The notes below the pieces were generated by a model. That model ran no database searches, had not been told where the DNA came from, and worked only from the letters and a program-made list of their open reading frames with translations. The translations under genes were made by a program, and so were the position numbers. A stretch of DNA of 64,000 bases, taken from positions 62,001 through 126,000 of the IMG/VR virus record IMGVR_UViG_3300031669_000001. One strand, 5' to 3'. Shown here piece after piece: positions 28,617-58,717 of the stretch (its first letter is position 1; every line of letters begins with the position of its first letter).

Positions 28617-29054
28617 TTATTTTCCTCTTAATGCTATAACGTGATCTTTTGGTTTTGGCACGAAGTTAGGCTTCTTCATGATAGTCTTGCAGGTCAAGAT
28701 GTACTTGCCCTTCTTCTTGTCAAACTCTAACGTGAATGGAACGTTGATCTTTCTGAATGTGTCCATGATGACGCCTTCAAATTCACCACGCTTAACCTCA
28801 TCGTTGAAGTTTCCTGCCTCTGCAAAGATTGCCTTGTGATGGGCTTTCAGCTCTCTAAAGGTCTTAAACAGTTCATCAGGTGTAACATTATCTCTACGAT
28901 AACCTTTCTCATCTACAGCTTCATCGGCGATTCGATCACCGAAATGCTTTGAAAAGTTAACAATGATTCCAATCGTGGCAAAGCTCTTCCTGATCTCAAA
29001 CTCAATGTTATTGATCTGTTCTTGTGACATCTCCATCAATTCATGCAGCTTCAT
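28617..29054 (-). CDS. Putative internal head protein
   Basis: MKLHELME N-terminus; FSKHFGDR motif. Confidence 0.6.
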   Translation of the reverse strand: MKLHELMEMSQEQINNIEFEIRKSFATIGIIVNFSKHFGDRIADEAVDEKGYRRDNVTPDELFKTFRELKAHHKAIFAEAGNFNDEVKRGEFEGVIMDTFRKINVPFTLEFDKKKGKYILTCKTIMKKPNFVPKPKDHVIALRGK

Positions 29055-29497
29055 TTCTTTCCCTTTTTAGTCAGTACAAACAGAGCTCCGCTATCTCCTT
29101 CGATTTTATCTAACTTATAGCCTGTCAAATAATTCTTTATCATACGCTCATAAAGTTTCGCTCTTGCATCACCTGCATCTCTCTTTACAGCAGAAAACTT
29201 TAACATGTAAGGATCGTGCTTCTTTATCAAATTCTCTAAACACTTTTTGATGAAGGCAAAAACTTCAAATTCTCGACCCGATCCTGTCTTTTCATGAGAT
29301 TGATGCTTGTCAGCATTTTCTTCTGTAAAGTCTATTTCCCAAAAATATTCTTCTTCAAATGGCACTCTTTCCTTAGCAGCACCAAAATTGATAGTGCGAT
29401 CTCCGATTTTTGCCGATGCACCATATTCTTGTGGACTATCAGCGGTCACCTTAAAGTCAGTGAATTTTGATGTGTTCAAGAGCTCCTGAAGATTCAT
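29051..29497 (-). CDS. Putative internal head protein (paralog A)
   Basis: MNLQELLN; GSGREFEVFAFIKKC. Confidence 0.6.
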   Translation of the reverse strand: MNLQELLNTSKFTDFKVTADSPQEYGASAKIGDRTINFGAAKERVPFEEEYFWEIDFTEENADKHQSHEKTGSGREFEVFAFIKKCLENLIKKHDPYMLKFSAVKRDAGDARAKLYERMIKNYLTGYKLDKIEGDSGALFVLTKKGKK

Positions 29498-29972
29498 TTC
29501 TTCTCCAATGTAAACTCTATGGTTGAATCACCAGAAACTCTTGCATGTCTAATTCCAACTTCCTGCTTTGAAATGGTGTAGCCTTTTAAAAATCGCTTCA
29601 AGAGCCGTTCATAAACTTCCGCACGCTTGATGGTTCCCTTCACCTTATCTGCTGTAAATCTTATTGCACCAGGGTGATGCTTGGATATCAGGTGTTCCAT
29701 ACACTGTTTGATGAACGCGAAAACCTGAAATTCGTAACCTGATCCAGTGATTTCAAAGGATGTATGTCTTAGCTCATCACCAGTTTCTTCTGAAAAAGCT
29801 ACTTCCCATAGATCAACAGACTTGTCATCTTGATCAGTTTCTTTCTCATCAGCGCACCAAAAACAATCTTACGAGCCCCTATGGTGGCTTCAACGTCGTA
29901 CTCATCCGAGTTGTCAGCTTTAACCTTGACATCAGTAAATTTCTTGGTATCTAAAAGCTCTTGCAATATCAC
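29494..29972 (-). pseudogene. Frameshifted paralog B of 29051..29497
   Basis: GTG-start frame MILQELLDTKKFTD...VFGA shifts near 29853 into ADEKE..WEVAF..GSGYEFQVFAFIKQCMEHL. Confidence 0.75.
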
Positions 29973-30718
29973 TTTGATCCTCCAGTTTTCTTTTTAGGTG
30001 TCTTACCTTTTACAGTTTCAATTTTATTCTCTTCATCATCATCTTCTCTCTTATTTCTGATTCGATAAAGAGCAGTTTTAATCTTTTCAGCTTTGTAATA
30101 ATCGCTGTGATTATAGACCGGATCCGTGATGACAAGTTGATTATTTGCTCTCAACATCATATTTCCCGAGTGGAGATCTAATTGATTACCACCTTTTAGG
30201 ACAACTCTGAGCATCTTGAAACATTCTCTGCAAAAATCTGGAACATCATGAACCATAGATTGAAATCTTTTAAATTCGGCTGCGCTATAAGGTTCATGAA
30301 TCCTTTTGATATATTCCTCCAACTTAGATTCTGAGTGTATGTCCCTCAATTCTCCAAAAATATCTGCAACTATATCTGCATCCTCGAATTTCTTCATAGG
30401 ATTAAGCTTTTCCATTCTTACGTATCTAATCTTGTCCGGGAAGTCTTTTGGTCGAAGAAAGAACGAAGATAGCGTCTTTGGCTTAGAAAGAAGTTTTGGA
30501 AAATAGATGCTTGGATTAGCCGCGATGTAGTTTATGTAGTCATCATAGCTAGAATCTTGAATCCAAAATTTAACAATCCCAGATTTTGACTTGCTTAATG
30601 TCACACCAAAAGTTCCACGACCTTCTTCCTTATAGCCGCTGCTACCCATAGATTGAAGAGCGGCTTCTACGTCGGTGTCGTAGAACTTTTTAACTCCAAC
30701 TAATTCAAATAGCTTCAT
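29969..30718 (-). CDS. Protein-kinase-like fold protein with head-targeting motif
   Basis: GRGTFG loop, IVKF, FPK, MEKL, DLHSGN, VITDP; MKLFEL N-terminus. Confidence 0.75.
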   Translation of the reverse strand: MKLFELVGVKKFYDTDVEAALQSMGSSGYKEEGRGTFGVTLSKSKSGIVKFWIQDSSYDDYINYIAANPSIYFPKLLSKPKTLSSFFLRPKDFPDKIRYVRMEKLNPMKKFEDADIVADIFGELRDIHSESKLEEYIKRIHEPYSAAEFKRFQSMVHDVPDFCRECFKMLRVVLKGGNQLDLHSGNMMLRANNQLVITDPVYNHSDYYKAEKIKTALYRIRNKREDDDEENKIETVKGKTPKKKTGGSK

Positions 30719-31866
30719 TTAATAAATTCCTTGATCATCTTTTCTTCGGATGGAGTCTTCATCTTGGTACCATCTGCAAATGTCACATTGTGGAACGTTG
30801 TAGGGTATTGTTGAAAGTATGTTCCAAGATGGTTAGACTTGTTGACGACTTTGTTGTTCACGTCAAAGTGAGAACCATCTGTAAAGAGGAACTTGAATCC
30901 AACCTCCACAGTTCCCATGCTAGAGTTTATTCTTGGTGGCTTGCTCTTGAGTACTTCTATCTTGTCAAGGTTAGCTTTCTTTTCTACAATATGACTAAGC
31001 TTTGCTACAGTCTTTGACAAGAATTGCTTCTCAATTGCTTCACGAATCTCACTCGATTCTTTCTTAGGCCAAGCTTTACCAGCAGGCGTAACCTTAAAGT
31101 TATACATTCTATATGGCTTGTCAGAATCTTTTTCTGGTTTGTCAGTGTCAAATTCGAAGAACTTCATCGCGATCTGATACGTTTGTTGGTTAACGTTTAG
31201 ATCAGTAACTTTAGATGACCAACGAACTTTCTCTCTCTTGTAGGTGATCTCTTTTGCGTTCTCAACAGACTTGATCAATTCTTCAAAATAGTCTTTCATC
31301 ACCTTCTCAAACTCTGTAAGCTGCTTATCGACTGTAGGCTTGACAGCATCGACTACCAGCTTTTGAGCTTCAGCGCTGCCCATCTTCCTATTGAATGCAT
31401 TTAGATCCGCAGGCTTTGGTACACGACCTTTGAGGATCTTTGGTTTCAAGTCTTTAAGAATCTTTTGGATTTCGGTTGCAGCCACAACAATCTCACGACG
31501 ACCTGTTAGATACTTCTTAATGTCCACGTTACTCATTCCCTGCAAGGCATGATCAATATCACGAAGTTGCTTTGGACTACCATTAAAATTTAAGTAATGA
31601 CCAGCTACATCTTTATCATAAGCGTAGCGCATCGTATCACTACCATTGAATGGCTTTCCTTGTTCATCGAGAGCTCGTTCAAGGGCGTGTGTTAGTACAT
31701 CTTTTATGGTAACGTAGGTTACGTTGTAGATCACACCAGTTTTGACAGCGTTAGAAAGGGCTTCAAGTTGTTCTTCAGCTTTCTTTTTCCTAGGTTCTGC
31801 TAAGTATTTGATGATAGGATCAAACTTTTTAAGGTCAAGACTCTCTAACAGGATAGCTAACTTCAT
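30715..31866 (-). CDS. Putative internal head protein
   Basis: MKLAILLE N-terminus; Lys-rich; no domain recognised. Confidence 0.6.
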   Translation of the reverse strand: MKLAILLESLDLKKFDPIIKYLAEPRKKKAEEQLEALSNAVKTGVIYNVTYVTIKDVLTHALERALDEQGKPFNGSDTMRYAYDKDVAGHYLNFNGSPKQLRDIDHALQGMSNVDIKKYLTGRREIVVAATEIQKILKDLKPKILKGRVPKPADLNAFNRKMGSAEAQKLVVDAVKPTVDKQLTEFEKVMKDYFEELIKSVENAKEITYKREKVRWSSKVTDLNVNQQTYQIAMKFFEFDTDKPEKDSDKPYRMYNFKVTPAGKAWPKKESSEIREAIEKQFLSKTVAKLSHIVEKKANLDKIEVLKSKPPRINSSMGTVEVGFKFLFTDGSHFDVNNKVVNKSNHLGTYFQQYPTTFHNVTFADGTKMKTPSEEKMIKEFIK

Positions 31867-31877
31867 TTAATTCTCCG

Positions 31878-32276
31878 TTATTGCAATAAATTGTCAAGCT
31901 TGTCAAAGAAGTTTTGAGTCTTTGAATGTAAGTTGTCAGGTAGATCCACAAGTTTGAATGATTTCACCTTGCTGATCTCCTTTGAAGCGGATGCTGTGCC
32001 TGCATTGTCAACCTTACATGAAAAGTAGGTTGCGTTGCCAATCTCAGCGATCTTCTTTAACTGTCCAGAAGTTACACTGACATGTGCTTCTTCCTTAAGT
32101 TCTCTGACAGCAGCTTCAACGGGTGATTCACCTTCATCTACTCCACCGCCAAAGAAGTTCCATTGATTTGGATTGCTTGATGTTGGCGCTCTCTTTCCAA
32201 GAATCAACTTATCTGACGTGAATAGGATGACCCATGCAGTCTGTTTAGGTGCTTCAAAAATATCAACTAACTTCAC
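31878..32276 (-). CDS. Nudix hydrolase with head-targeting motif
   Basis: GGGVDEGESPVEAAVRELKEE Nudix box; MKLVDIFE. Confidence 0.88.
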   Translation of the reverse strand: MKLVDIFEAPKQTAWVILFTSDKLILGKRAPTSSNPNQWNFFGGGVDEGESPVEAAVRELKEEAHVSVTSGQLKKIAEIGNATYFSCKVDNAGTASASKEISKVKSFKLVDLPDNLHSKTQNFFDKLDNLLQ

Positions 32277-32815
32277 TTAGTAGCCTCAACTTCTATGTCA
32301 ATTGGTTCTGCATCGGTTCCAAATATTTGTTTTAGTAGAGCATTTCTATCCGCAACGATGACAGTATTATTTACAGTGCTAGGCGTACCAGCTGCAATTT
32401 TTGCAGCTCTTACCTTTTGACGCTTAAACTTTGCATCGACTCTAGAATTGACTGCATTTAAAGCGATGTTCAAGAATTGCGCTGCAACTTCATTCTGTCT
32501 AGCAGCAAACTTTGGATCAACTTCTTGCGCCATTCTAGCGCTCTTCTCAAACGCGATGAGCGCGCTGGTGTGTACAGTCTCTAGCTGTCCATCGATGTGA
32601 AGATCTTCTATGCGCTCCTCTTTATCTATCTCTTCCAGAGTAGGCTCAGATTTACGAGGCACCAGTTCACCAGAAGTTGGATCGATGATGATAGACGCCC
32701 TTTCATTCACCTCAACCGCTGCCTTCTTGTGAACGTCATCAAACACTGGAGTACTTCCAGGCTCTATGTCGAACACACTTTCTAGGGGGTTTGCCTTTTT
32801 GTCATTGTCTGTCAT
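32273..32815 (-). CDS. terS: Terminase small subunit (gp16-like)
   Basis: Helical core EVAAQFLNIALNA and C-terminal VNNTVIVADRNALLKQI. Confidence 0.6.
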   Translation of the reverse strand: MTDNDKKANPLESVFDIEPGSTPVFDDVHKKAAVEVNERASIIIDPTSGELVPRKSEPTLEEIDKEERIEDLHIDGQLETVHTSALIAFEKSARMAQEVDPKFAARQNEVAAQFLNIALNAVNSRVDAKFKRQKVRAAKIAAGTPSTVNNTVIVADRNALLKQIFGTDAEPIDIEVEATK

Positions 32816-32921
32816 TCTATTTCTCCTCGATTTTCAAATGAAAATCTTCTATAGTATATATAAGCTCTAGTGATCACCAGATGACACCAGGTTTAACGCA
32901 ATCAAATTGATGATAGCTTCA

Positions 32922-33365
32922 TCATCTCAAGAACATTTCTTTCTCAGTCATCACTCTGAACTTAATGCCATGACTCTTGCAAAATGCATCAGCTGCTGTC
33001 CACTTCGCCTGATTGATAACCATCTGAACTGCATCGTAGGTAGTTGGTTTCTTCCGAGTGATCCTGTTAGGATCTTGGCTTGACGGTTTAATTTCAATCA
33101 CTTCAGTGATAATGTCGCCTGTCCGATTCTTATACTTAACGATAAAGTCTGGAAAGTAGTTACACAGCTTCGGCTTACCATCAATGCTTCTCTTTATTGG
33201 GTGAAAATATGGAATTTTAAACTCTTCAGATCCCCACTTGATGACGTTTGGATTCTTGTCACAGAAGTCCATGAATCGAAGTTCCCATGAACTCAAAAAT
33301 CTAATCTTTCTAGGATCACCTAGATACTTTTCAACGTTGATTGGGGTATAAAGTCCTTTAGCCAT
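32922..33365 (-). CDS. gp4: Head completion nuclease (T4 gp4, TnsA-like)
   Basis: YTPINVEKYLGD, SSWE..FM.FCD.NP.VIKWGSE, YFPDF, IEIKP. Confidence 0.88.
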   Translation of the reverse strand: MAKGLYTPINVEKYLGDPRKIRFLSSWELRFMDFCDKNPNVIKWGSEEFKIPYFHPIKRSIDGKPKLCNYFPDFIVKYKNRTGDIITEVIEIKPSSQDPNRITRKKPTTYDAVQMVINQAKWTAADAFCKSHGIKFRVMTEKEMFLR

Positions 33366-34621
33366 TATGTAGAACTCTCAGGATTAAATGGTGATGGTGG
33401 AGTAGGTTGAGTTATAGTTTGATCTTGAACAGCAGCCTTGCCTCCATTGACAGCGTTGCTACCAGATGTGATAGATGCTAACGTTGTAGAAACGTTAAGT
33501 GACACAACATCAATCGCGCTGCTGGCTGCAGTTCCTATAGTCTTGTCAACTCCACTGATAATTTTTGCAGGACCTGCAAGCAATGGACTAAGGACGTTAC
33601 TTAACGCAGCCGGAACATGATTGAGGATATCGCTGCCTTTTCTAAGCGCGTCGTAGATGCCAGAAGTTTTGACTGTTGGAGGAGCATCTCCATACATTGG
33701 AGCTCCATCTATATGTCCCGCGTTAGGAATGCCAGAGGTTCCACCAGCTCTAAACAAATCTGTAACACCCCAAGAATAAAGAGTATTGTCGTTAACTGTT
33801 TTAAGATCTATCGCATCGTACGAGAACGTTATAGTTGCCATAGATCCAGTGTTGCTGTCTTCGTGACTCAGCTCATCAAATTCAAAAGTTTCAATGCGTG
33901 GATTTAAGAAAGTAAAACGATTGGCTCTTGGTCCGCCATTTTTTGTAAGATCAACGTAGATCTGTTCTAGAATTATCTTCTGACCTCGAGTGTTAGAATA
34001 TCCATTTGCGTAAGGAATTGTCGATGACGCCAATCCCCAGCCTCTATCGATACCGTAATTGCCTGCACCTACTCCAGAAGTCTGAGCCATGTAAGCTCTA
34101 AAGAAGTCATTGACGCTGTTGCCAATTTCATCCAAGAATGTAATTTGAAGAGGTTCGAGGATGGTATTTGTTAGAACTCTTGTTCTAAAGTTGTAATAAT
34201 TTACATCAACGTGATTGAATTTGATCTTTGGCTTATCACAACGATGAACGTAAAAATAAAAATCATCGCCACCTGGAAATCCAACAAATTGAACCTTAAA
34301 GAGGAACTTGAACTTTGGGTGATGCAAGTTCATGTCATCAGCATAGTGAATAGCTTCAAATTCACCAGCAACACCGAATTTTGCTGTGTTTATAGGAGCT
34401 AAAAGCCTATTAAGCTCTGTAGCACCAGGAAGAGGAATCTTACTAAGACCTGGAATTCTACTTTCTATCCCAGGAATTCCTCCAAGAGTTTGAGGTATCT
34501 GATTGCCTAATGAGAAGATTTCCGATGGTGATAAATTCTGAGCTTGAAACGCGTCTATCTCAGCCTGGATGCTTGGAGGGCTTCCTACTGTAAGGCCTAA
34601 AGCATTTACTGGATCTGTCAT
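33365..34621 (-). CDS. Tail-tube-fold protein (tube initiator, gp48/gp54-like)
   Basis: PKFKFLFKV, KPKIKF..VNYYN, PLQITFLDE, DELS.ED..ITFSYD. Confidence 0.65.
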   Translation of the reverse strand: MTDPVNALGLTVGSPPSIQAEIDAFQAQNLSPSEIFSLGNQIPQTLGGIPGIESRIPGLSKIPLPGATELNRLLAPINTAKFGVAGEFEAIHYADDMNLHHPKFKFLFKVQFVGFPGGDDFYFYVHRCDKPKIKFNHVDVNYYNFRTRVLTNTILEPLQITFLDEIGNSVNDFFRAYMAQTSGVGAGNYGIDRGWGLASSTIPYANGYSNTRGQKIILEQIYVDLTKNGGPRANRFTFLNPRIETFEFDELSHEDSNTGSMATITFSYDAIDLKTVNDNTLYSWGVTDLFRAGGTSGIPNAGHIDGAPMYGDAPPTVKTSGIYDALRKGSDILNHVPAALSNVLSPLLAGPAKIISGVDKTIGTAASSAIDVVSLNVSTTLASITSGSNAVNGGKAAVQDQTITQPTPPSPFNPESST

Positions 34622-35118
34622 TTATCTTTCTTCTTAGAAGGTTTTTCTTGCTCTACATCTTCATCTTCATCTTTGCCTTGCTTGAGAATCTTCAGGAGGT
34701 CTATCACCAACTTTTGAGCAGATCTTCCAAGCTTAGTCCCGAGAGAAATTTCACGAAGGTAGGATACGTCTGACTTTACGATGTAACCTAGCTTTTTCTT
34801 AGTATCTATTTCATGCTTCAAAAAAAGCTTTTTGATCTGTTTGTCTATAGCACCACCTTTTTCTATCTTCAAAGGTGTAAGAGAATCTATCTCAAATTCA
34901 CCAGAGTCAGTGCTGTTGTCAAATGTTAAGTTGATAGGTTTACCATTTGCACCTTTGATGGTGCTCTTCTCATGGGCTACGCCCAGATAATCTTTATCCT
35001 TGTCTCTCTTAGGATCCTTGACGATTCCAGCCTTTTGACGAAATAGCAGCATCGCGATAGCATCTATCGGCAGCAGCTTTTCCTTCTTTTTCTCTTCAAA
35101 TAGATCACAGATTTTCAT
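34618..35118 (-). CDS. Putative internal head protein
   Basis: MKICDLFE start with GGAG SD; late promoter upstream. Confidence 0.6.
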   Translation of the reverse strand: MKICDLFEEKKKEKLLPIDAIAMLLFRQKAGIVKDPKRDKDKDYLGVAHEKSTIKGANGKPINLTFDNSTDSGEFEIDSLTPLKIEKGGAIDKQIKKLFLKHEIDTKKKLGYIVKSDVSYLREISLGTKLGRSAQKLVIDLLKILKQGKDEDEDVEQEKPSKKKDK

Positions 35119-35139
35119 ACCCATCTCCAAATTTTTAAG

Positions 35140-35147
35140 TATTTATA
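35140..35147 (-). promoter_or_regulatory. Late promoter TATAAATA
   Basis: Perfect consensus in the intergenic gap. Confidence 0.75.
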
Positions 35148-35182
35148 AACAAAGAAGGCGAATGCATTTTCTGCATTCGCCT
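35147..35182 (-). terminator. Rho-independent terminator
   Basis: AGGCGAATGCA/TGCATTCGCCT 11-bp stem plus T-rich tail. Confidence 0.75.
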
Positions 35183-35201
35183 CTAAAGGATAGAATTGAT
35201 G

Positions 35202-35429
35202 TTAAATTTTGTTACGTTTACCGTTTAGATCAGCGGGACCTACTATCTTGTCCTTTTCCATTTCATCCAACAATCTATAAGCTAATTCAATTGAAATTTG
35301 CATCTTACGAGCTAGCGCAGGCCCAGAGATTCTATCTAGTTCAGTGATAGACTTCTTAGCGCGATCATACATGACTTCACGGTCATGTATGTTACGACGA
35401 TCTTGTTGTAGAATTTCAAAAAGCTTCAT
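35202..35429 (-). CDS. Small protein with FtsK-gamma-like winged-helix pattern and head-targeting motif
   Basis: MKLFEIL; SGPALARKMQISIELAYRLLDEMEKDKIVGP..GKR. Confidence 0.6.
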   Translation of the reverse strand: MKLFEILQQDRRNIHDREVMYDRAKKSITELDRISGPALARKMQISIELAYRLLDEMEKDKIVGPADLNGKRNKI

Positions 35430-35704
35430 CGTTTTCCGTAATGACCATTGAAGCTTTTTTGATCCAATTCAATTGTGATGGTACCTTTGTAAAAGATGCT
35501 TGAGTGCTGGGAATCTTGAAGATCAAACTTGACGATGCCTTTTCTCAGATCAGAATCCTTTGATACATTTGTAATCTTGCCAGAGATTTCTTTACCGAAA
35601 ACTTTCTGAATGTTCTTGCTTATAGCACCAGCCATAGCGTGCTGCTCGGTAGACCAGTCACCAGAAGATTCTTTTAACTTCAACAACTCTTTTATCAAGC
35701 TCAT
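35426..35704 (-). CDS. Putative internal head protein
   Basis: MSLIKELLKLKE. Confidence 0.55.
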   Translation of the reverse strand: MSLIKELLKLKESSGDWSTEQHAMAGAISKNIQKVFGKEISGKITNVSKDSDLRKGIVKFDLQDSQHSSIFYKGTITIELDQKSFNGHYGKR

Positions 35705-36204
35705 TTTAATCCCCTGTAACCTGCAACGTGACGCTGGAATAATTTTACTTGACGTTGAACCTCTGCAATAGAACAGGTTTTAAGCTTATCTGTTTCTTTT
35801 GAAGCTACACCCATCTTTCTCATCATGGCTATTGCTTCTTTCCTGAGCTTTGCATCTGTCGGAGATTCCTTTTTGACAGGCTTAACAGGAACACCTTTTT
35901 GTGTAAAATCCTCTTTAAGAGATTTTAGATGTTGTCTTTCAGCGCTCTTCAACTTTGGGATGAAATTTTTCACGTAATTTTCATCTTTATCTACATAAGC
36001 TTGAGCCATATCCGTTGCTTGATATTCTCTATCAGTAACATAATCTTTTCCAGCAGATTCTCCGTTCTTAAAAAATTTAACGGTATATTCAGCTTTGCTA
36101 GAGTCGTGATATTTTTTAGCAGTTCGAGTCTTATCAGCACTTATGTAAGAATCGATTTCTTGACCGCCTTTTGTAAGATTCAACAATTCTTTTAATAGTT
36201 CCAC
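35701..36204 (-). CDS. Putative internal head protein
   Basis: MELLKELLNL; internal KSLKE. Confidence 0.55.
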   Translation of the reverse strand: MELLKELLNLTKGGQEIDSYISADKTRTAKKYHDSSKAEYTVKFFKNGESAGKDYVTDREYQATDMAQAYVDKDENYVKNFIPKLKSAERQHLKSLKEDFTQKGVPVKPVKKESPTDAKLRKEAIAMMRKMGVASKETDKLKTCSIAEVQRQVKLFQRHVAGYRGLK

Positions 36205-36213
36205 GATATTTCC

Positions 36214-36495
36214 TTAATAAGTCTTTCCACTTGGTGTGCATGTAGGATTATCCAACCACATAACTTCACCATTGCCATTATCTGGTCCAATTTTGCCCAT
36301 GCGCTTTAGCTTTAGCTTCTTCCTGTTAATCTTAGGAACAGACTGCTTTGGGCCTGCAGGGTAAGCTTGATCAGCGGAGAAGGATCGTTGAATCGCATCT
36401 GTTCCAAGGTAAACTATCTTATCGTTGCCCTTGTTTATCACTTCAGGACGCTTGATCTTAAAATTGTGTCCTTCAAAAAGTTCATCGAGTTTCAC
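36214..36495 (-). CDS. Putative internal head protein, basic
   Basis: MKLDELFE. Confidence 0.55.
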   Translation of the reverse strand: MKLDELFEGHNFKIKRPEVINKGNDKIVYLGTDAIQRSFSADQAYPAGPKQSVPKINRKKLKLKRMGKIGPDNGNGEVMWLDNPTCTPSGKTY

Positions 36496-38577: not shown

Positions 38578-39621
38578 TTAGTCAGGATTCGGTAGAGATT
38601 CTGAATTTTCCTGCTCTTCATTCCAAGGCGCAGCGCCGTCATCCCAATTTACACCACCCGTTGGTACGTTAGCATTTATTGTTGCAGTACCGTCACCAGT
38701 TCCTGCATTTGTAGCGATGAATGTAGTACCTATCGTATTTGATATCGATCCACACTGAGTAAAATCTGTTGGAATAGGCGTACCAATAGTTTCAATCTCA
38801 TACGTCTGACCGACTACAAATGAGCCGGCAGTTATAGAAGCTGTAGTGCTGTCCCAAACACCAGGACCTTCATCGCCTGTTACAGTGAATGCTGTTACTG
38901 GACCTGCAGATCCGAATGGGACCAACTCGCCATTTTCATCTATCTCATCTAGAGTAAGTTTATCCAAGTCACCAATTCTAACTGTGATGCTTTGAATCAA
39001 ATCATTTCTAACTTCAATTGGTGGTGACAACCATACTGGAAGTTCAAATTGAAGAGTCCAGATTATCATTCGACGATCCACGCCCATCGGATAATTCTCT
39101 TCATTTTGCATACTGCGCAGAAACAGCTTTGCAATCTTCGTCCAGTCAAATGGCGCGTCGTTGAACTGTAGTTGAAGATCATAATCAAATAGGATCAAAA
39201 TTTGTTCTAAGATCTGGAACATTTGATCTGTGTTTGAAGCATATACTGCGAGTTCCATCTGCATGTTGTAAGGTATCGCCATAACTCGTCTTAGAGTTTT
39301 AACATCATCTGGAAACACACCGCCTTGTTCTAACATCGTCCTTCGATCAACTTGATTTACACCGTGAAGCCTATCAGGAGCAAGTTCAAGTCCTGTCATG
39401 TATGCAGACATCATTGGAATGGTGTGAAGCTTGTTTTGAGTGTTACCAGCCGCGATGGCCGCAGTTACTCGATCACTTGAACCGTACCTCACGGGGACCG
39501 TCATGGTGATCAATTTTCCAGCACCATCAAGACCACCGGTAACCTGCATTCCTGTAAAAACGTTTGCGAAACCAAGAATGAACTTCTTGAGTTGCTGATT
39601 GTAGTAATAATTTCTGATCAT
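38578..39621 (-). CDS. gp15: Tail terminator / sheath stabiliser (gp15-like) with C-terminal extra module
   Basis: YYYNQQLKKFILGFANVF, VPVRYG, PYNMQMEL, QILEQIL..F. Confidence 0.8.
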   Translation of the reverse strand: MIRNYYYNQQLKKFILGFANVFTGMQVTGGLDGAGKLITMTVPVRYGSSDRVTAAIAAGNTQNKLHTIPMMSAYMTGLELAPDRLHGVNQVDRRTMLEQGGVFPDDVKTLRRVMAIPYNMQMELAVYASNTDQMFQILEQILILFDYDLQLQFNDAPFDWTKIAKLFLRSMQNEENYPMGVDRRMIIWTLQFELPVWLSPPIEVRNDLIQSITVRIGDLDKLTLDEIDENGELVPFGSAGPVTAFTVTGDEGPGVWDSTTASITAGSFVVGQTYEIETIGTPIPTDFTQCGSISNTIGTTFIATNAGTGDGTATINANVPTGGVNWDDGAAPWNEEQENSESLPNPD

Positions 39622-40160
39622 TTTATGACCTTTATAGTTGCTAATCTCTTCTTATCATCTCGTGAGACTATCTCAAACTTTAAATTACGAGGTAACAAAT
39701 AATTGTCTTCCCAATCTGCTAATTTTTTAGCTTCAGGAGGCGCAATAGTTGAATCTTTTACTACTTGAGATAGGTCTAACACGGGAACACCTCTTGGTAC
39801 TTGAATCGTTAAGATCATCCTATCATCTGGGTGAACATAACCTGGATGTTTTACCATTCCCTTATTTGGCGATGTAGTGACAAATCCTTTGTCGATAAAA
39901 GTATCACCTACTTTCTTATCATTTAATGCATACATCGGAATAGCTCTGTACAGAATCATTGACTTAGAGTTAGGTGCCCTCTCAATTACTTTATCTAGCA
40001 ACTTGATCGCATTAGCCTGTAATTCCTTGACGTTCTTATCATTGAATCTCAAAGTACTGTTAAGCCACCCTGAATCTCTCAAGTAATCTAGCACAGCCTT
40101 ATTTTCTTCTTCAGTCTGCGCTTCACCTGCCATCTCCAAAAGTTCTTTAAATAGATGCAT
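39618..40160 (-). CDS. VIP2/Alt-like ADP-ribosyltransferase fold with head-targeting motif
   Basis: LN..LR, LYRA, VGDTFIDKGFVTTS, LLPRNLKFEI; ExE motif reads EDN; MHLFKELLE. Confidence 0.75.
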   Translation of the reverse strand: MHLFKELLEMAGEAQTEEENKAVLDYLRDSGWLNSTLRFNDKNVKELQANAIKLLDKVIERAPNSKSMILYRAIPMYALNDKKVGDTFIDKGFVTTSPNKGMVKHPGYVHPDDRMILTIQVPRGVPVLDLSQVVKDSTIAPPEAKKLADWEDNYLLPRNLKFEIVSRDDKKRLATIKVIK

Positions 40161-40827
40161 ACATCTTCAATTCATTTTTCCACTTGGTAACATACTCTGG
40201 ATTCAATCCTGTGTGGTGACGAACATTTGTAATTCCCACGTTATACGCGTGGATAGCCTTATCTTTACTTCCAAGCTTATGGTAGTATCTGCTCAGAATG
40301 TCGGAAGCAAATTCTACCTGCTTATCCATGTTTCCTTTCAAATCTTTCGCTTTAATACCCCAAACCTTTGGACGAACTTGTGTAAGACCTATTGCTTTGT
40401 CATGCCTAAGTCCAGATTTAGCAGCTGGATTAAAGCTACTTTCAATTCCAATGACAGCTAACAGATCGGTGGCTTTTGGGAAAACAGGATCAGCATATTT
40501 TGTTACAAGCTCAACTATATGCTTCGCTTTTGCAGGCGAGACACTGTTTTTATACTTGTCAAGGACGATGTCAGTCAGCTTAGAAACTATTTCTTTCTCT
40601 TTTTCTGCCGAAGACTTTGCGGCTTTAGCTTCGGCTTCGGCTTTATCTACCTTCGACTGCGCAGCTTTTTGTGCCGCGGTAATTTGTGTCTTTACTTGTT
40701 GAGTATCATGACTGTGAATAGCACCTGATGCCAAACCTGCTGCCAATGCAGCTCCTGCTACAGCATGTCTTAGCTTGATCTCGTCAAGTTGTTCATCTTC
40801 CAGGATTATTTCATTCACCTTCATCAT
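40147..40827 (-). CDS. SLT-family lytic transglycosylase with propeptide and hydrophobic segment
   Basis: IGIESSFNPAA, AIGLTQV, AIHAYNVG; N-term MKVNEIILEDEQLDE then AVAGAALAAGLA. Confidence 0.85.
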   Translation of the reverse strand: MMKVNEIILEDEQLDEIKLRHAVAGAALAAGLASGAIHSHDTQQVKTQITAAQKAAQSKVDKAEAEAKAAKSSAEKEKEIVSKLTDIVLDKYKNSVSPAKAKHIVELVTKYADPVFPKATDLLAVIGIESSFNPAAKSGLRHDKAIGLTQVRPKVWGIKAKDLKGNMDKQVEFASDILSRYYHKLGSKDKAIHAYNVGITNVRHHTGLNPEYVTKWKNELKMYASI

Positions 40828-40851
40828 GAGGCCTTTGTAATAGAGATTGAT

Positions 40852-40857
40852 TATTTA
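40852..40857 (-). promoter_or_regulatory. Late promoter core (GTAAATA)
   Basis: Upstream of the SLT gene. Confidence 0.6.
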
Positions 40858-40864
40858 CGGTTTT

Positions 40865-44844: not shown

Positions 44845-44850
44845 TATTTA
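44845..44850 (-). promoter_or_regulatory. Late promoter core (CATAAATA) for gp13
   Basis: Intergenic, followed by GGGAG SD. Confidence 0.65.
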
Positions 44851-44892
44851 TGCTTTGTGGAGAGAAAAAGTAGCTAAAGTTACATGTTCAAA

Positions 44893-44926: not shown

Positions 44927-46132
44927 ATGAAACTCTTAGAAGAACTTTTAACAATCAATGAAGCATCAACTGCAGGCCGTGCATGGGAAGGTCGTATAAA
45001 GAACATCGACAATCTTATGTCATGGATGTATGACAAGGGTATCTTGACAAAAACAGAACAGGCAAGCAAAGATACTATCTTCCGTCAATATTACAGGTTC
45101 TACAATGACGGTGATCTTCCAAGAGCTCTTGCAAACAAGGGATTCTCAAAGCTTGACATGAAATACAACAAACAAAAGATTGAAAAAGCTCTCGAAGATT
45201 ATCTAGAAGACTTTATCAAGAAGATGCTTGGTAAGTATCTTCCAAAAATTGATCGTAAAGAATTCAGAATTGACAACTCAATCGCAGATCTAAGCACAGT
45301 CAAAGATGTAGCTAAACGTGTAGATGCTCATGGATTGTTGACATACTGGATCAAGAAAGTCAAGATAAATGATGATGCTGGTGAATTGGCTAAGTATGTT
45401 GATGATCTGCAAAAGATCTATGACAAGCTTTTAAATGTCTTAAACAAAGCAGATCCAAAGGGTAAAAATTTTATCTATTCTCATCGCAAAGATTTAATGA
45501 CGGAAGCTGGAACGTGGACTTCGGCGATGGAAGCTGATTATAAGAAGATAGAGGATACTTGCAAAAAGATAGAAGATTTCATCGGTAACTTAATTGAGGG
45601 ACTTAAGAAGCTGAAGAAGAATTCTGTCTTCAAGGAAAGTCTCAATGAGATGGCAGCTAGTCACAAGTTTTCATCTGGCTTTATGAAGTCATTGGATGCT
45701 AAAATATTGGTGAAGAAATTTCGCGATGGTGAAGAAACTTTCGATCTTAAGAACGGTGATTCCTACAAAGCTGTTAAGAAGATTCAAGGCAACATGCTAG
45801 AGGCTGGAATGCTAGTGATGGGAAGTTACAGCAGTACCAATCAAGGCGCAGAACTTTATCAGATCCTAGGCTTTACTGGCGATGAAAAGAAGTATGGAGA
45901 AGGTGGTGTAAAGTTTAAAACTGCTAAAGAGATGCTAGCTCACTATAAAGTTACAAGCTTGAAAGCTCTCAAAGCACTTCAAGATAAAAATGAGTATGGG
46001 TATCACTCATACATTGTAGTAAAGGATCTTGAAGATGGAGATGAAGGTCCTTGGTTCTATGTTTATTCTGGCCGCTGGGCACGTGGAAGTGGTGCTGAAC
46101 AACTAACATTTACCTTGGTAGAGAAAGTTTAA
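44927..46132 (+). CDS. Putative internal head protein, two-domain polyprotein-like
   Basis: MKLLEELLTINE start; internal FKESLNE-M junction. Confidence 0.65.
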   Translation: MKLLEELLTINEASTAGRAWEGRIKNIDNLMSWMYDKGILTKTEQASKDTIFRQYYRFYNDGDLPRALANKGFSKLDMKYNKQKIEKALEDYLEDFIKKMLGKYLPKIDRKEFRIDNSIADLSTVKDVAKRVDAHGLLTYWIKKVKINDDAGELAKYVDDLQKIYDKLLNVLNKADPKGKNFIYSHRKDLMTEAGTWTSAMEADYKKIEDTCKKIEDFIGNLIEGLKKLKKNSVFKESLNEMAASHKFSSGFMKSLDAKILVKKFRDGEETFDLKNGDSYKAVKKIQGNMLEAGMLVMGSYSSTNQGAELYQILGFTGDEKKYGEGGVKFKTAKEMLAHYKVTSLKALKALQDKNEYGYHSYIVVKDLEDGDEGPWFYVYSGRWARGSGAEQLTFTLVEKV

Positions 46133-46627: not shown

Positions 46628-46811
46628 AATCGTCCGGGCAAAGAATTTTTATCATCGGGTTCACACCATCATACATCGTAAATTGACAGTTTCTACCCAT
46701 TTTAGCCTTCAAGATCAAGGCGTGGCCTAGAGCTTCTAACCCTGAGGCCTCGCCAAGAATCTCTACAGATCCATCTGCATGTTTATGAATGTACGGAGTC
46801 TTAACTGACAT
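46611..46811 (-). CDS. Hypothetical protein
   Basis: Coupled ORF. Confidence 0.5.
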   Translation of the reverse strand: MSVKTPYIHKHADGSVEILGEASGLEALGHALILKAKMGRNCQFTMYDGVNPMIKILCPDDFDETP

Positions 46812-47898
46812 TTTGCAAGTTCTTCAGGTAAGTCATGAACCATTGACGAGCAAAGTTATTGATCGACGGCATCACTTCACGACGGTCTAAGCCGCTAGCT
46901 TCGATTGTGTCAGTCTCTTCCTTCAACACGTCGTTACCAACCAGCTTCAAGAATGCGCCAATGTTCTGAGTGCTCCGTTCAACGTTCGTCTCAATCATCT
47001 TCTCAACCATCTTTTCCAGACGGTGATCAGTACAAACATTCTCGGTAAACTCTTTGATAGAATTCACCTTCTCAATGTCAACGCTTGCGGTCTTCTTAAC
47101 CTTAGTGTCGCTGTGCTTCTCGCCTTTTACCTTGAAGATCAGGTCGTGCGTCTTAAAGTTACACTTCGAGATGCAACGCCATACTACACCTTCACCGACG
47201 CCTTCAACTCCGAACGCCTTTCCAACAGGGCACATCTTTTCTACTTCAGTCGTCAGCTCTACCAATTGATTTTGGATGAGCTCTGGGTTGGTAAAGTCAA
47301 TGTCGATAGTCCATGTTTGGAACTTTTGGATAGAGAAGATGTTACTCTCAGCGGCAGAACCTTCTGTCATCCAAAATTCATGATCAAATTGATCCTGAAC
47401 TTGAATCAGCTGTTTAGGAGAGAACCAACGAGATGTTCCACCGTCTTGACCATCTTCTGTGACAGGACCAGGAGTGTAGATCTTGATACCAAAAACGACG
47501 AAGCGCTTTGGCACTTGGCTGATAGCAACTTTCTTCATGATGCCTTTACCGCACCATTCACCGTAAATCCCAATAAGATCTCCTTGATTGATGTTGGTCA
47601 TGCCGTAAACACCAGCTGCAATGTTGAAGTAAGTGTCGATGCCTTTACCAGGAAGTTCAGAGATAAAGCGTGCGAAGCCTGCATTATCTTTTTCAACTGT
47701 AATAATCTGTTCGCGAGACTGACACCAGATTTCACCAGTGCGAGGGTCTTTCAAGACACCCGCGTTCGTTCCGTGGAGCTTCACGCTACCATTGAACTGT
47801 AGGACAGGCAGAGGTTCATCATGGAAACGCGCGCGATCGCGAACTTTCTTGACAGCGTCTCTGAATTGTTTGATTTCAGGAAATTTAACTAATTGCAT
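46801..47898 (-). CDS. ATP-dependent RNA ligase (Rnl2-like family)
   Basis: KLHGTN (motif I), IYGEWCG, FVVFGI, GEGVVW, FKVKGEKH. Confidence 0.85.
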   Translation of the reverse strand: MQLVKFPEIKQFRDAVKKVRDRARFHDEPLPVLQFNGSVKLHGTNAGVLKDPRTGEIWCQSREQIITVEKDNAGFARFISELPGKGIDTYFNIAAGVYGMTNINQGDLIGIYGEWCGKGIMKKVAISQVPKRFVVFGIKIYTPGPVTEDGQDGGTSRWFSPKQLIQVQDQFDHEFWMTEGSAAESNIFSIQKFQTWTIDIDFTNPELIQNQLVELTTEVEKMCPVGKAFGVEGVGEGVVWRCISKCNFKTHDLIFKVKGEKHSDTKVKKTASVDIEKVNSIKEFTENVCTDHRLEKMVEKMIETNVERSTQNIGAFLKLVGNDVLKEETDTIEASGLDRREVMPSINNFARQWFMTYLKNLQNVS

Positions 47899-55832: not shown

Positions 55833-55835
55833 AAA

Positions 55836-55841
55836 TAAATA
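55836..55841 (+). promoter_or_regulatory. Late promoter core (AATAAATA)
   Basis: Upstream of the Sel1 gene. Confidence 0.55.
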
Positions 55842-55867: not shown

Positions 55868-56608
55868 ATGAAACTCCATGAAATTTTAGATCAAGTAGAA
55901 CAAGAACAATTAGATGAAGGTCTAAAAGATTTAATCACAAAGCTCAAAACTAATTGGAAGAAAACCATGATTGCAGGTCTACTTGCAACAGCAACCGCAA
56001 TGGGGCCTTCAGCTGTTAAAGCTTGTGATTTTATTGGATGGAATGATACATTCAAAAATATCCAACATACACAATTAAATAAGCTTACACCAGAAGCAAA
56101 AAAAGCTATCGATCAAAGTGATTATATAAAAGCTGCCAAGACAATCACAAATAAACCTGACGAAATAAATTTAGTTGCAGCATGCCTGGCATTATCAAAT
56201 GATGAAGCTTCTATATCTGTTAAATTCTTAACTCAATTAGCTAAAAAAGATATACCAGAAGCACAATTTCAATTGAGTCTTGCATATTCAAATGGTAAGG
56301 GAGTTGCAGAAAATGATAATGAAGCATTAAAATGGAATGAAAAAGCTGCGTATCATAAAAAATCTCCAGGTGCTACAAGTGCACAAGGATATATGGCTCT
56401 TAATTATATGTATGGGCTAGATAGCAAAATAGATAATGTTAAAGCTTATGCATGGGCTATTATTTCAGTTGAAAATTATATGGAAAATGATACATTTAAA
56501 AGAAAAGATCTTATAAGAACGAGAGAGACTCTTGCAAATTTTTTATCTGATGATCAACAAAAACAAGCTGAAAATTTAGTTAAAAATATTACTAAATCAC
56601 TACATTAA
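55868..56608 (+). CDS. Sel1-repeat protein with propeptide and signal-like segment
   Basis: AQFQLSLAYSNGKGV..DNEALKW..AA; AQGYMALNYMYG..DNVKAYAW; N-term MKLHEILD..EQLDE. Confidence 0.8.
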   Translation: MKLHEILDQVEQEQLDEGLKDLITKLKTNWKKTMIAGLLATATAMGPSAVKACDFIGWNDTFKNIQHTQLNKLTPEAKKAIDQSDYIKAAKTITNKPDEINLVAACLALSNDEASISVKFLTQLAKKDIPEAQFQLSLAYSNGKGVAENDNEALKWNEKAAYHKKSPGATSAQGYMALNYMYGLDSKIDNVKAYAWAIISVENYMENDTFKRKDLIRTRETLANFLSDDQQKQAENLVKNITKSLH

Positions 56609-58689: not shown

Positions 58690-58717
58690 TTTTGTGGCTC
58701 CTTGTAAGGTTATCTTG

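Follow-up and report, generated by a model that had tools for sequence, protein, structure and literature searches.

A lytic transglycosylase of a 345-kb T4-like phage has a signal-like segment behind a putative capsid-targeting tag

Results

The transglycosylase gene and its surroundings

The window that we analyzed is a 64,000-nucleotide stretch (positions 62,001 to 126,000 of IMG/VR record IMGVR_UViG_3300031669_000001) from the 345-kb genome of an uncultivated T4-like phage. Its machinery is T4-like, with gp23, gp13, gp15, a tail sheath, a gp22-like scaffold and a gp21-family protease. The minus strand of the window carries an open reading frame (ORF) for a lytic transglycosylase of the SLT type (Table 1), with its stop codon at 40147–40149. 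We rejected a plus-strand reading of the same interval, whose translation is full of stops.

The ORF begins with two adjacent ATG codons, the first giving a protein of 226 amino acids and the second (40824) one of 225. The second ATG is likely to be the true start, because the closest homolog is 225 amino acids long and begins with MKV, because a Shine-Dalgarno-like AAAGG element is better spaced for it, and because the start context of a second gene in the window, coding for a Sel1-repeat protein, aligns with it. A 37-nt intergenic gap lies upstream of the start and contains, at a distance of about 31 nt, the word GTAAATA, which matches ATAAATA with one mismatch. By k-mer count, ATAAATA-type words are enriched upstream of genes in this phage, and this late-promoter-like motif has equal spacing upstream of the transglycosylase and Sel1 genes.

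The transglycosylase gene belongs to a same-strand block that comprises a gp13-like neck gene, the gene for a 541-residue virion protein, the SLT gene, an ADP-ribosyltransferase gene and gp15. The context of the gene is late and structural. The neighboring ADP-ribosyltransferase has a tag of its own, of the kind described below, ending in Leu-Leu-Glu at residue 9.

Table 1. Coordinates of features in the window and the evidence for each.
Feature	Positions	Strand	Evidence
Tagged lytic transglycosylase, whole coding sequence	40147-40827	-	ORF list; Pfam SLT; homolog lengths and starts; start context compared with Sel1 gene
Acidic propeptide or capsid-targeting-like tag, residues 1-15 from the second ATG	40780-40824	-	Sequence; homolog conservation; shared ORF starts
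Signal-like segment: basic (Lys, Arg, His), 16-residue Ala/Gly-rich uncharged run, His-Ser	40711-40779	-	Family metrics; position of class B signal
Lys/Ala/Glu-rich helical spacer	40537-40710	-	AlphaFold2 helix 39-92, pLDDT 82-94; variable, gappy alignment block
SLT catalytic domain, goose-lysozyme-like	40150-40536	-	PF01464; invariant residues; fold matches
AAAGG, Shine-Dalgarno-like, transglycosylase gene	40832-40836	-	Sequence; aligned with AAGGA of Sel1 gene
GTAAATA, late-promoter-like, upstream of transglycosylase gene	40852-40858	-	k-mer enrichment; spacing in Sel1 gene
Alt-like ADP-ribosyltransferase, downstream, overlaps transglycosylase stop by 14 nt	39618-40160	-	PF03496, E 4.3e-12
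ATAAATA upstream of gp13-like neck gene, at head of block containing transglycosylase	44845-44851	-	Motif search
ATAAATA, late-promoter-like, ~30 nt upstream of Sel1 gene	55835-55841	+	Motif search
Sel1-repeat protein	55868-56608	+	Translation; Pfam Sel1
Sel1 protein tag with EQLDE	55868-55918	+	Translation
Sel1 protein long basic stretch, hydrophobic run, Ala-x-Ala-like site	55919-56023	+	Translation
gp22-like scaffold protein, tag-like start	58718-59635	-	Weak Pfam T4_CASP match; phrog_10922; motif density
gp21-family prohead protease, proposed processing enzyme; Leu-Ile-Glu at residues 8-10	63213-63854	-	PF03420, 94.9 bits

Catalytic domain and spacer

An earlier, sequence-only reading of this DNA had called the protein an SLT lytic transglycosylase, and Pfam, the catalytic motifs and the predicted fold of the minus-strand product all bear this out. 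Residues 122–207 match the SLT domain (PF01464) with an E-value of 2.2e-10 (40.5 bits, against a cut-off of 21.3), and a scan of the whole genome gives 41 bits for the same match. The catalytic Glu-Ser, GLTQ and AYNVG motifs are present, and residues E129, S130, G147, L148, Q150, N196 and G198 are invariant in an alignment of 38 sequences. An AlphaFold2 model of the protein has a mean pLDDT of 87, rising above 90 across residues 98–221. In Foldseek searches its best PDB matches are Slt, MltE, MltC and goose-type lysozymes (probability 1.00, with E-values of only ~2e-3), and in BFVD it matches phage SLT proteins with E-values down to 9e-7. Judged by motifs and model, the tagged ORF encodes a lytic transglycosylase with an Slt/MltE-like fold and predicted muralytic activity.

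The helical spacer ahead of this domain differs in both length and sequence among homologs. The best PHROG match of the protein is to an internal part (614–793 of 1269) of a tape-measure family, and its other PHROG matches include 'internal virion protein with endolysin domain'. A tape measure protein with an SLT domain is expected to be a very long helical protein whose size scales with the tail, and we rejected this assignment for a protein of only 225 residues.

An acidic tag with candidate protease sites

The N-terminal layout set out in the earlier reading is as described: an acidic segment ends in EQLDE and is followed by IKLRH, a 16-residue uncharged run rich in Ala and Gly, HSHD, a linker and the SLT domain. 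The acidic tag has a net charge of −5 in the precursor (−1 to −7 across the family) and holds two candidate protease sites, Ile-Leu-Glu and Leu-Asp-Glu, the latter at residues 13–15 counted from the second ATG. Among the homologs from our first search that cover the Leu-Asp-Glu site, P1 is Glu in 36 of 36 and P3 is Leu, Ile, Met or Val in 36 of 36, while neighboring positions vary. The tag has a Glu-hydrophobic-hydrophobic-x-Glu pattern like that of the capsid targeting sequence (CTS) of phage T4, MKTYQEFIAE (PMC8442874). T4 gp21 cuts after such motifs–for example, at ITE-6 and LTE-619 in Alt (PMC5694885; PMC9026906). The predicted mature transglycosylase has a pI of 9.70. We also considered a signal-first isoform made from an internal start, as in holin/antiholin pairs, and rejected it, as there is no ATG, GTG or TTG between the tag and the hydrophobic run.

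EQLDE occurs near the N-terminus of only two ORFs in the 345-kb genome, those for the transglycosylase and the Sel1 protein, and these are also the only two that combine a tag with a delayed hydrophobic run. The Sel1 protein had been said to share the layout, and its translation agrees: a 17-residue acidic start to EQLDE is followed by a basic stretch, a 14-residue hydrophobic run, Pro and Ala-Val-Lys-Ala. A search for close homologs of the Sel1 protein found none. Because only these two ORFs have an N-terminal EQLDE, and because the Glu and Leu positions are kept in 36 of 36 homologs, the layout shared by the two proteins is, on this comparison, more than chance.

The signal-like segment and its counterparts in relatives

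The hydrophobic run of the transglycosylase consists to 75% of Ala, Gly, Ser and Thr; the family medians are 15 residues, 71% of these four amino acids and a Kyte-Doolittle value of 1.7. Its h-region metrics resemble those of a lipoprotein-type SLT paralog in the same genome. Small residues that could fit the −3/−1 rule are present near the segment but are not conserved. A crude hydrophobicity sum gives about +6 kcal/mol over 19 residues, by which the segment is predicted not to form a stable membrane helix. At the extreme N-terminus of the precursor we find not a Sec-type layout but 15–16 net-acidic residues ahead of the basic stretch, so a Sec-type, basic-then-hydrophobic N-terminus would arise only after the proposed cleavage. 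A net-negative stretch ahead of a Sec signal disfavors export.

We compared 96 relatives of the protein, most of which belong to two classes. The 55 sequences of class A combine the tag and the [LIVM]-x-Glu motif with a hydrophobic segment that is weak (median 12-residue Kyte-Doolittle value 1.97); their Glu and hydrophobic positions are kept throughout, down to about 35% identity, while the flanking residues vary. The 33 sequences of class B begin directly with a strong signal or anchor of the ordinary kind (median 2.66), which aligns in position with the hydrophobic segment of the tagged transglycosylase. The class B proteins are of the same size and share homology across spacer and catalytic domain (profile E-values down to 1e-40), and their genes are encoded in T4-like phage contigs, but they lack both the acidic tag and the [LIVM]-x-Glu motif, and their hydrophobic segment is much stronger. 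When a tree is computed from catalytic-domain columns only, class B falls into clades of its own, and the two classes are separated by 2–4 changes, compared to about 28 in shuffles.

Plain Sec-type signals are found on the 33 class B relatives, from other T4-like phages, and on two SLT paralogs that this phage itself encodes, so the export of these enzymes in the course of infection is tolerated. This weakens an earlier suggestion that masking keeps the enzyme harmless during synthesis. The likelier purpose of any masking is to retain the protein in the cytoplasm for long enough to be packaged.

The softness of the segment also bears on whether it still acts as a signal. The protein might be packaged and cleaved while its segment, no longer a signal or anchor, works inside the head or tail channel. 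It could, for example, bind the scaffold core, or bundle into an oligomer that makes up part of a trans-periplasmic conduit, as ejection proteins do in short-tailed phages. The segment is less hydrophobic than that of class B and, by the crude sum, too weak to be a stable membrane helix, as this would predict, and some ejected core proteins, T7 gp16 for one, do contain lytic transglycosylase domains (PMC5380687); the T7 core chain 9jyy_I is a weak, domain-level fold match to our model, at rank 44. On the other hand, the basic-then-hydrophobic order and the positional match to real signals are kept over deep divergence, in the Sel1 protein, which is unrelated, the same tag is followed by a textbook signal layout, and 225 residues is far below the size of known conduit proteins. 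We regard a purely in-head or conduit role for the segment as quite unlikely. T7 gp16 and related internal virion proteins of short-tailed phages, which have a lytic transglycosylase or lysozyme domain, cut the wall, are carried in the capsid and are expelled at infection to help cross the peptidoglycan (PMC5380687), and our transglycosylase can be likened to them by its PHROG matches and its weak fold match. However, they exceed 1000 residues, with the transglycosylase domain of the gp16 type at the N-terminus, form a podovirus core stack and have neither a CTS-type propeptide nor gp21-type processing, whereas the protein studied here has 225 residues and comes from a contractile-tailed, T4-like phage. 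Given its size, its T4-like myovirus background and the weak domain-level fold match, we did not classify it as an internal core protein of the T7 gp16 type.

In two close relatives the gene order is gp13, a ~540-residue protein, SLT and gp15. Replication or NAD-metabolism genes, not structural ones, surround the transglycosylase gene of class A phages that are more distant, so we rejected a structural-gene context as a universal feature of the family; it holds for close relatives only. A megablast search of 50,697 phage records, with the neck region as query, gave no match, and tblastn with the transglycosylase gave nothing beyond three weak domain-level matches. The nearest cultured relatives of the phage are Ralstonia phage RsoM2USA and Xanthomonas phage XacN1, whose capsid proteins are 57% and 54% identical to its own, and a profile search of both whole records found no transglycosylase homolog. 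The hosts infected by relatives are Ralstonia, Xanthomonas and Stenotrophomonas. Virions of XacN1 carry a chitinase and a lipase (PMC5852040); we checked both for the tag and it is absent, so they offer no proteomic analog of the tagged enzyme.

Prohead protease, scaffold and other tagged proteins

The genome encodes both a candidate processing enzyme, the gp21-family protease, and a scaffold protein that is dense in possible sites, with 19 [LI]xE motifs (6.2 per 100 amino acids, compared to 1.13 genome-wide). The capsid protein has Leu-Thr-Glu just ahead of its Pfam domain. Starts of the form MKxxE-hydrophobic-hydrophobic were found in 16 of 506 ORFs, where 0.9–1.4 are expected, which is a 12–18-fold enrichment over controls that used internal positions and internal Met residues. 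Twelve of the 16 tagged ORFs are located between 28.6 and 56.6 kb in the window, and 12 of the 16 have a pI above 9, compared to 25% genome-wide. Tag-like starts are also found on scaffold and core ORFs. The tagged ORFs include the Alt-like ADP-ribosyltransferase, a kinase, a NUDIX protein, a protein with a DNA-binding domain, the Sel1 protein and several unknowns, and from these annotations their functions look like those of host take-over cargo. Some of the tagged ORFs adjoin one another and may be paralogs.

Could the tag have no function? Under this reading, codon or initiation preferences and local gene duplication would account for the shared starts, and the EQLDE match would be a recombination remnant without a role. 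Lys is a common second residue in the products of bacterial and phage genes, and MK-Leu-x-Glu starts could partly stem from translation-initiation preferences. The possible paralogy of neighboring tagged ORFs points the same way, as does the likeness of the SLT and Sel1 genes in their 5' regions at the DNA level, even upstream of the start. Against this stand the enrichment over both kinds of control, the conservation of the Glu and hydrophobic positions among the 55 class A sequences despite variable flanks, and the association of the tag with a basic pI and with scaffold and core genes. We therefore consider a non-functional tag very improbable.

Other wall enzymes of the phage

Three SLT genes are encoded in the genome, all of them small stand-alone ORFs, and the two paralogs of the tagged gene have conventional export signals. 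About 20 other exported proteins of the phage likewise have ordinary signals from their first residues onward. Searches of the genome for PF00959 (T4-lysozyme) and M23 domains found none, which does not prove that the tail is without a wall-degrading domain; a search for the gp5 OB-fold domain gave no match anywhere, controls included. The genome also has a separate GH108 endolysin candidate, as does a relative's contig, and we rejected the transglycosylase as the phage's only endolysin.

These exported enzymes bring up a different account, in which the transglycosylase is not packaged: it would be a late Sec-exported or SAR-like (signal-anchor-release) periplasmic enzyme for lysis, wall remodeling or phage exclusion, with the acidic extension as a cytoplasmic tail or a brake on export. 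The class B relatives in T4-like phages are plainly exported or anchored, the two paralogs are conventionally exported, the hydrophobic segment is rich in Ala and Gly like SAR domains, and the distant class A genes are outside structural clusters. Export alone, however, leaves four things unexplained: why [LIVM]-x-Glu is invariant and lies precisely at the junction, why basic, soluble proteins that are not membrane proteins bear this tag, as do scaffold and core proteins, why the tag resembles the T4 CTS, and why a net-negative stretch precedes the segment. The ordinary N-terminal signals of the ~20 other exported proteins and the presence of a GH108 endolysin candidate also speak against it. 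We see this as an unlikely account, though one with some real weight.

In the SAR endolysins themselves, such as P1 Lyz and R of phage 21, the muralytic domain is preceded by a weakly hydrophobic N-proximal segment rich in Gly and Ala. That segment is at the very N-terminus, behind a few basic residues, whereas the segment here lies behind 15 net-acidic residues with a protease motif and is followed by a long helical spacer. We rejected membership in this group: the composition fits but the position, behind the tag, does not.

Discussion

We propose that the transglycosylase is a capsid-targeted pro-protein that is cut by the prohead protease, and that its hydrophobic segment derives from a real export signal. 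From the comparative evidence, we give this proposal about an even chance of being right. Because the acidic tag looks like the T4 head-packing tag, the enzyme is probably carried in the virion, with its signal exposed only after head maturation. The earlier reading, in which prohead-protease cleavage unmasks the signal, thus holds up in its comparative part, which covers the tag and its motif, the protease, the scaffold, the other tagged ORFs and the position of the segment; the part that has lost ground is its rationale of harmlessness.

The steps that we infer, namely packaging, cleavage, ejection and envelope targeting, would be as follows. The first 15 residues would serve as a capsid targeting sequence of the T4 type and bring the pro-form into the prohead, while the acidic tag and the softened hydrophobicity jointly hold the precursor in the cytoplasm for packaging. 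The gp21-family protease would then cut on the C-terminal side of Leu-Asp-Glu, and perhaps of Ile-Leu-Glu as well. In its mature, basic form the enzyme would stay in the head with the DNA, together with other tagged cargo (the Alt-like ADP-ribosyltransferase, the kinase, the NUDIX enzyme and the Sel1 protein), and would exit the virion at infection. Its new N-terminus, basic and then weakly hydrophobic and rich in Ala and Gly, would descend from the export signal or anchor that distant relatives still have. The exposed segment may bring or tether the enzyme to the envelope, where the helical spacer would point the catalytic domain toward the peptidoglycan.

The internal proteins of T4 enter the cytoplasm, and a transglycosylase has no substrate there; an extra step of export or release must therefore be assumed. 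In a bolder version of the proposal, giant T4-like phages would pack periplasm-destined effectors (at least the transglycosylase and the Sel1 protein) whose signals are masked by the tag and unmasked by the protease, eject them unfolded into the cytoplasm and leave their re-export to Sec. We hold this version to be rather improbable. If it were true, ready-made enzymes would reach the periplasm from inside, seconds after infection and before gene expression.

The closest parallel is with the internal proteins and Alt of T4. To our knowledge, none of the T4 internal proteins is a cell-wall enzyme or has a signal-like hydrophobic segment right after the cleavage site. As in the phage studied here, they have a short N-terminal propeptide, of about 6–20 residues, that resembles the T4 CTS and ends in [L/I]-x-Glu (PMC9026906, PMC5694885), and in both systems the mature proteins are basic, the protease is of the gp21 family and the scaffold is rich in such sites. 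The counterpart of Alt is the tagged ADP-ribosyltransferase that adjoins the transglycosylase. Compared with the T4 proteins, the propeptide here is longer and more acidic and has two candidate sites.

The job that we propose for the tagged transglycosylase is presumed to be the same as that of T4 gp5 and phiKZ gp181, tail-tip wall enzymes that open the peptidoglycan locally at infection (PMC5380687). Those enzymes are domains of the baseplate hub or spike, whereas the SLT enzymes here are small stand-alone ORFs in a genome without PF00959. Our literature search found no CTS-tagged transglycosylase; the lone paper that joins both terms concerns P1 DarB and the Sit tape measure protein.

The CTS of T4 is a classic device, and its known natural cargo (anti-restriction proteins and Alt) acts in the cytoplasm. 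If our proposal is true, CTS cargo extends to envelope-directed enzymes, a maturation protease switches on an export signal, and contractile-tailed phages without a tail-tip lysozyme gain another route through the cell wall. The split between classes A and B would be a natural experiment in which an exported enzyme became a packaged one by way of an acidic tag with a protease site and a softened signal. Short tags of this kind are used for loading foreign proteins into T4 heads, and a second, divergent tag family could be useful. For the phage itself, the ~16 tagged and mostly basic proteins are candidates for the injected arsenal of its 345-kb genome.

A lytic transglycosylase with an acidic N-terminal tag

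The virus record that contains the transglycosylase gene is 345,069 bp long, has a G+C content of 42.8% and carries direct terminal repeats. It belongs to a T4-like phage, in which gp15, gp13-type neck, tail sheath, gp23 capsid, gp22-like scaffold and gp21-family protease genes were identified. The closest cultured phages, as judged by capsid protein identity, are Ralstonia phage RsoM2USA (57%) and Xanthomonas phage XacN1 (54%), and no homolog of the transglycosylase gene was found in either. The SLT domain assigned to the protein in the sequence-only reading is borne out by Pfam, which places it at residues 122-207 (E = 2.2e-10; score 40.5 bits, cut-off 21.3), and no family member departs from the Glu-Ser, GLTQ and AYNVG motifs. 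PHROG matches include transglycosylases, lytic tail proteins, the inner part of a tape-measure family and an 'internal virion protein with endolysin domain'. An AlphaFold2 model made with 38 homologs as input (mean pLDDT 87) consists of a disordered start (residues 1-10), a low-confidence helix (11-31), a long confident helix (39-92) and a globular domain (98-221; pLDDT > 90). In Foldseek it matches Slt, MltE, MltC and goose-type lysozymes best among PDB entries, T7 core protein chain 9jyy_I coming lower in the ranking; among viral models its best matches are small SLT proteins from jumbo and T4-like phages.

A plus-strand reading of the interval was ruled out, its frame being interrupted by stops. 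The ORF opens with two adjacent ATGs, and the second (40824) appears the likelier start because the nearest homolog (92% identity, 225 aa) begins Met-Lys-Val, because an AAAGG element is better spaced from it, and because the start region matches that of the Sel1-repeat gene base for base, the single ATG of that gene corresponding to the second one here. The N-terminal residues described in the sequence-only reading are all present: an acidic stretch, the tag, runs to Glu-Gln-Leu-Asp-Glu and is followed by Ile-Lys-Leu-Arg-His, an uncharged Ala/Gly-rich run of 16 residues, and His-Ser-His-Asp.

Coordinates of the transglycosylase gene and other features, in the window unless marked G000:C1 (whole virus record) or L009 (contig of the closest relative with DNA)
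Feature	Position	Strand	Remarks
T7 gp0.7-like kinase	29969-30718	-	tagged
NUDIX hydrolase	31878-32276	-	tagged
FtsK-gamma DNA-binding domain protein, 75 aa	35202-35429	-	tagged
Row of small ORFs	35426-36495	-	tagged; no assignment
Tagged ORFs, extent	28617-36495	-	
Tagged ORFs, extent	44927-46132	+	
Collagen-like protein, 205 aa	37589-38206	-	own ATAAATA
gp15 tail sheath stabiliser	38578-39621		
ADP-ribosyltransferase, 180 aa (PF03496)	39618-40160	-	tag to Leu-Leu-Glu at residue 9; overlaps transglycosylase stop by 14 nt
Transglycosylase ORF	40147-40827	-	sole ORF in interval
AAAGG element	40832-40836	-	better spaced for ATG at 40824
gp13-type neck protein, 653 aa	42853-44814	-	
RNA ligase	46801-47898	-	
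RNA ligase	L009 3258-4337		
Tail sheath	51575-53770		
Sel1-repeat protein	55868-56608		own ATAAATA
HNH-type homing endonuclease	56592-57272	-	
gp23 capsid protein	57337-58728		
gp22-like scaffold	58718-59635		
GIY-YIG (SegE-like) homing endonuclease	59727-60272	-	
gp21-family prohead protease	63213-63854		
Small SLT ORF	G000:C1 55222-55815	-	outside window
Small SLT ORF	G000:C1 184515-185231	-	outside window
GH108 protein	G000:C1 252673-253230	-	outside window

Gene neighborhood and promoters

In two close relatives the gene order is gp13, a ~540-aa protein, SLT and gp15, with overlapping stops and starts; the window differs in having an ADP-ribosyltransferase, far shorter than T4 Alt, inserted ahead of gp15. 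The gp13-type neck protein is far bigger than the neck domain by itself, and its ~380-residue N-terminal extension has weak matches to tail-fibre and large virion-protein families. The neck module has an RNA ligase gene close by, as it does in the closest relative for which DNA is available. Just downstream of gp15 is a protein that is probably part of a fibre or whisker and has long collagen-like Gly-Pro-Thr-Gly repeats.

Words containing ATAAATA are enriched 12-19-fold within 60 nt upstream of genes, and the motif precedes the gp13-like, protease, tail sheath and Sel1 genes, and one further tagged ORF, by ~30 nt; GTAAATA occurs at the same spacing upstream of the transglycosylase. Since ATAAATA resembles the T4 late promoter sequence TATAAATA, we infer that it is a late promoter of this type. 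Extended -10-like words of the TGTGATATAAT type are enriched 10-13-fold upstream of genes genome-wide, pointing to an additional promoter class, host-sigma70-like, from which early genes would be transcribed.

Two N-terminal classes in the family

By word-based search the transglycosylase has 38 metagenomic relatives. All 36 that cover the site have a Glu ahead of the hydrophobic part and L/I/M/V two residues before it, and 34 of them have Lys or Arg four positions past the Glu; the positions immediately upstream of the site vary freely. The presumed propeptide has a negative net charge in all relatives (-1 to -7). The hydrophobic run (median 15 residues, 71% Ala/Gly/Ser/Thr, mean Kyte-Doolittle 1.7) has an insertion-energy sum over 19 residues of about +6 kcal/mol, a crude and only indicative figure, which fits a signal-peptide core or SAR-like segment and not a stable membrane helix. 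One close homolog, P0003 (286 aa, 73% identity), has ~65 extra residues between its Met-Lys-Leu-Asn-Glu-Ile-Ile start and Glu-Gln-Leu-Asp-Glu, which could be a genuine propeptide insertion or an artefact of assembly or gene calling.

A profile search widened the family to 91 matches, and 96 sequences were classified by N-terminus. Class A (n = 55) has the tag, [LIVM]-x-Glu, a basic stretch and a weak hydrophobic segment (median 12-residue hydropathy 1.97), whereas class B (n = 33) has an ordinary, strongly hydrophobic signal or anchor straight after the initiator Met (median 2.66); the other eight are truncated or not classifiable. On a maximum-likelihood tree made from columns from residue 85 on, thereby leaving out the N-terminal trait, class changes 2-4 times, whereas shuffled labels need ~28 changes and none of 500 shuffles came down to so few; we draw no direction of change from the tree, whose backbone is poorly resolved. 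Class B genes occur in T4-like phage contigs, beside RegA, clamp loader, RNase H, DsbA and PhoH genes. In position, the hydrophobic segment of the window protein thus corresponds to a genuine export signal or anchor, that of class B. In distant class A phages the SLT gene is near replication or NAD-metabolism genes; T4 internal-protein genes are scattered likewise. In one of these phages (contig L010) an ADP-ribosyltransferase gene also adjoins the SLT gene.

We can do without the proposal that masking the signal keeps the enzyme harmless during synthesis. That export of such enzymes is tolerated in infection can be seen from class B relatives and from the phage's two SLT paralogs, whose signals are of lipoprotein type (Cys after Ala-Phe-Ser) in one and classical in the other. 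Cytoplasmic retention for packaging accounts better than safety for the acidic tag and weaker hydrophobicity. Three stand-alone transglycosylases within a single phage are unusual. The GH108 protein is the likely endolysin, and the genome gave no match to a PF00959 lysozyme or M23 peptidase domain. The GH108 protein has a 13-residue N-terminal extension (Met-Gln-Ser-Trp-Lys-Glu-Phe-Leu...) before the usual family start, loosely like the tag but without a following [LI]-x-Glu.

Protease-type motifs and a set of tagged proteins

The prohead protease looks T4-like in specificity, as judged from motifs in its candidate substrates: the scaffold protein contains 19 [LI]-x-Glu motifs (6.2 per 100 residues, compared to 1.13 genome-wide), the capsid protein has Leu-Thr-Glu immediately ahead of its Pfam domain, and residues 8-10 of the protease are Leu-Ile-Glu. 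T4 gp21 cuts Alt at ITE-6 and LTE-619 and scaffold proteins at many sites, and LIE-9 is a candidate site within gp21 itself (PMC5694885, PMC9026906). In the T4 capsid targeting sequence, MKTYQEFIAE (PMC8442874), residues 4 and 7 have a role in targeting, and residues 8 and 10 have one in processing (PMC9026906).

A tag-type start (Met, polar, Leu/Val/Ile, x, Glu/Asp, hydrophobic, hydrophobic) is present in 16 of 506 ORFs in the genome, compared to 0.9-1.4 expected from internal-position and internal-Met controls; these and the other ORF counts are approximate because the ORF caller was a simple one that takes the longest ORF and filters overlaps. Twelve of the 16 fall within 28.6-56.6 kb of the window, and the set includes the ADP-ribosyltransferase at the transglycosylase stop codon; for several tagged proteins no match was found. 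The scaffold and two small head-module ORFs have related tags ending in Leu-Leu-Glu or Met-Leu-Glu. Mature pI exceeds 9 in 12 of the 16 tagged proteins, compared to 25% of all ORFs, and is computed as 9.70 for the transglycosylase after presumed cleavage; T4 internal proteins are highly basic too (PMC8442874). The ~16 mostly basic tagged ORFs are a candidate injected host take-over set. The two homing endonuclease genes lie on either side of the capsid and scaffold genes, and the GIY-YIG one stands between scaffold and the remainder of the head-core module.

The Sel1 protein, in which Pfam detects the Sel1 repeat, had been said to share the layout of the transglycosylase, and its translation agrees. 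Its 17-residue tag ends in the same five residues. After it come 15 residues of basic net charge, a hydrophobic run of 14, Pro, Ala-Val-Lys-Ala and Cys, which minus the tag would be a textbook signal layout. No close homologs of it were found. It and the transglycosylase are the only ORFs in the genome with a tag and a delayed hydrophobic run; ~20 others have ordinary signals starting within the first dozen residues.

In the main alternative, class A proteins would still be exported in the infected cell, the extension being a tail or brake. We think this unlikely, because it leaves unexplained the invariant protease-type motif, the occurrence of the tag on soluble basic proteins and proteins of the scaffold module, and the difference from the ordinary signals of the phage. 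The observations are most simply accounted for if the tag serves as a capsid-targeting propeptide that the prohead protease removes; the transglycosylase would then be cargo of the head interior, with a softened export signal as its mature N-terminus. We give this full reading an even chance, and the presence of a tag that is cleaved a somewhat better one. The prohead protease would remove the tag from the precursor, and the enzyme would be carried in the head. More tentatively, the unmasked segment may then direct it to the envelope. To reach peptidoglycan, a head-borne enzyme could leave the tail tube within the periplasm, or could enter the cytoplasm unfolded, like T4 cargo, and be re-exported by Sec.
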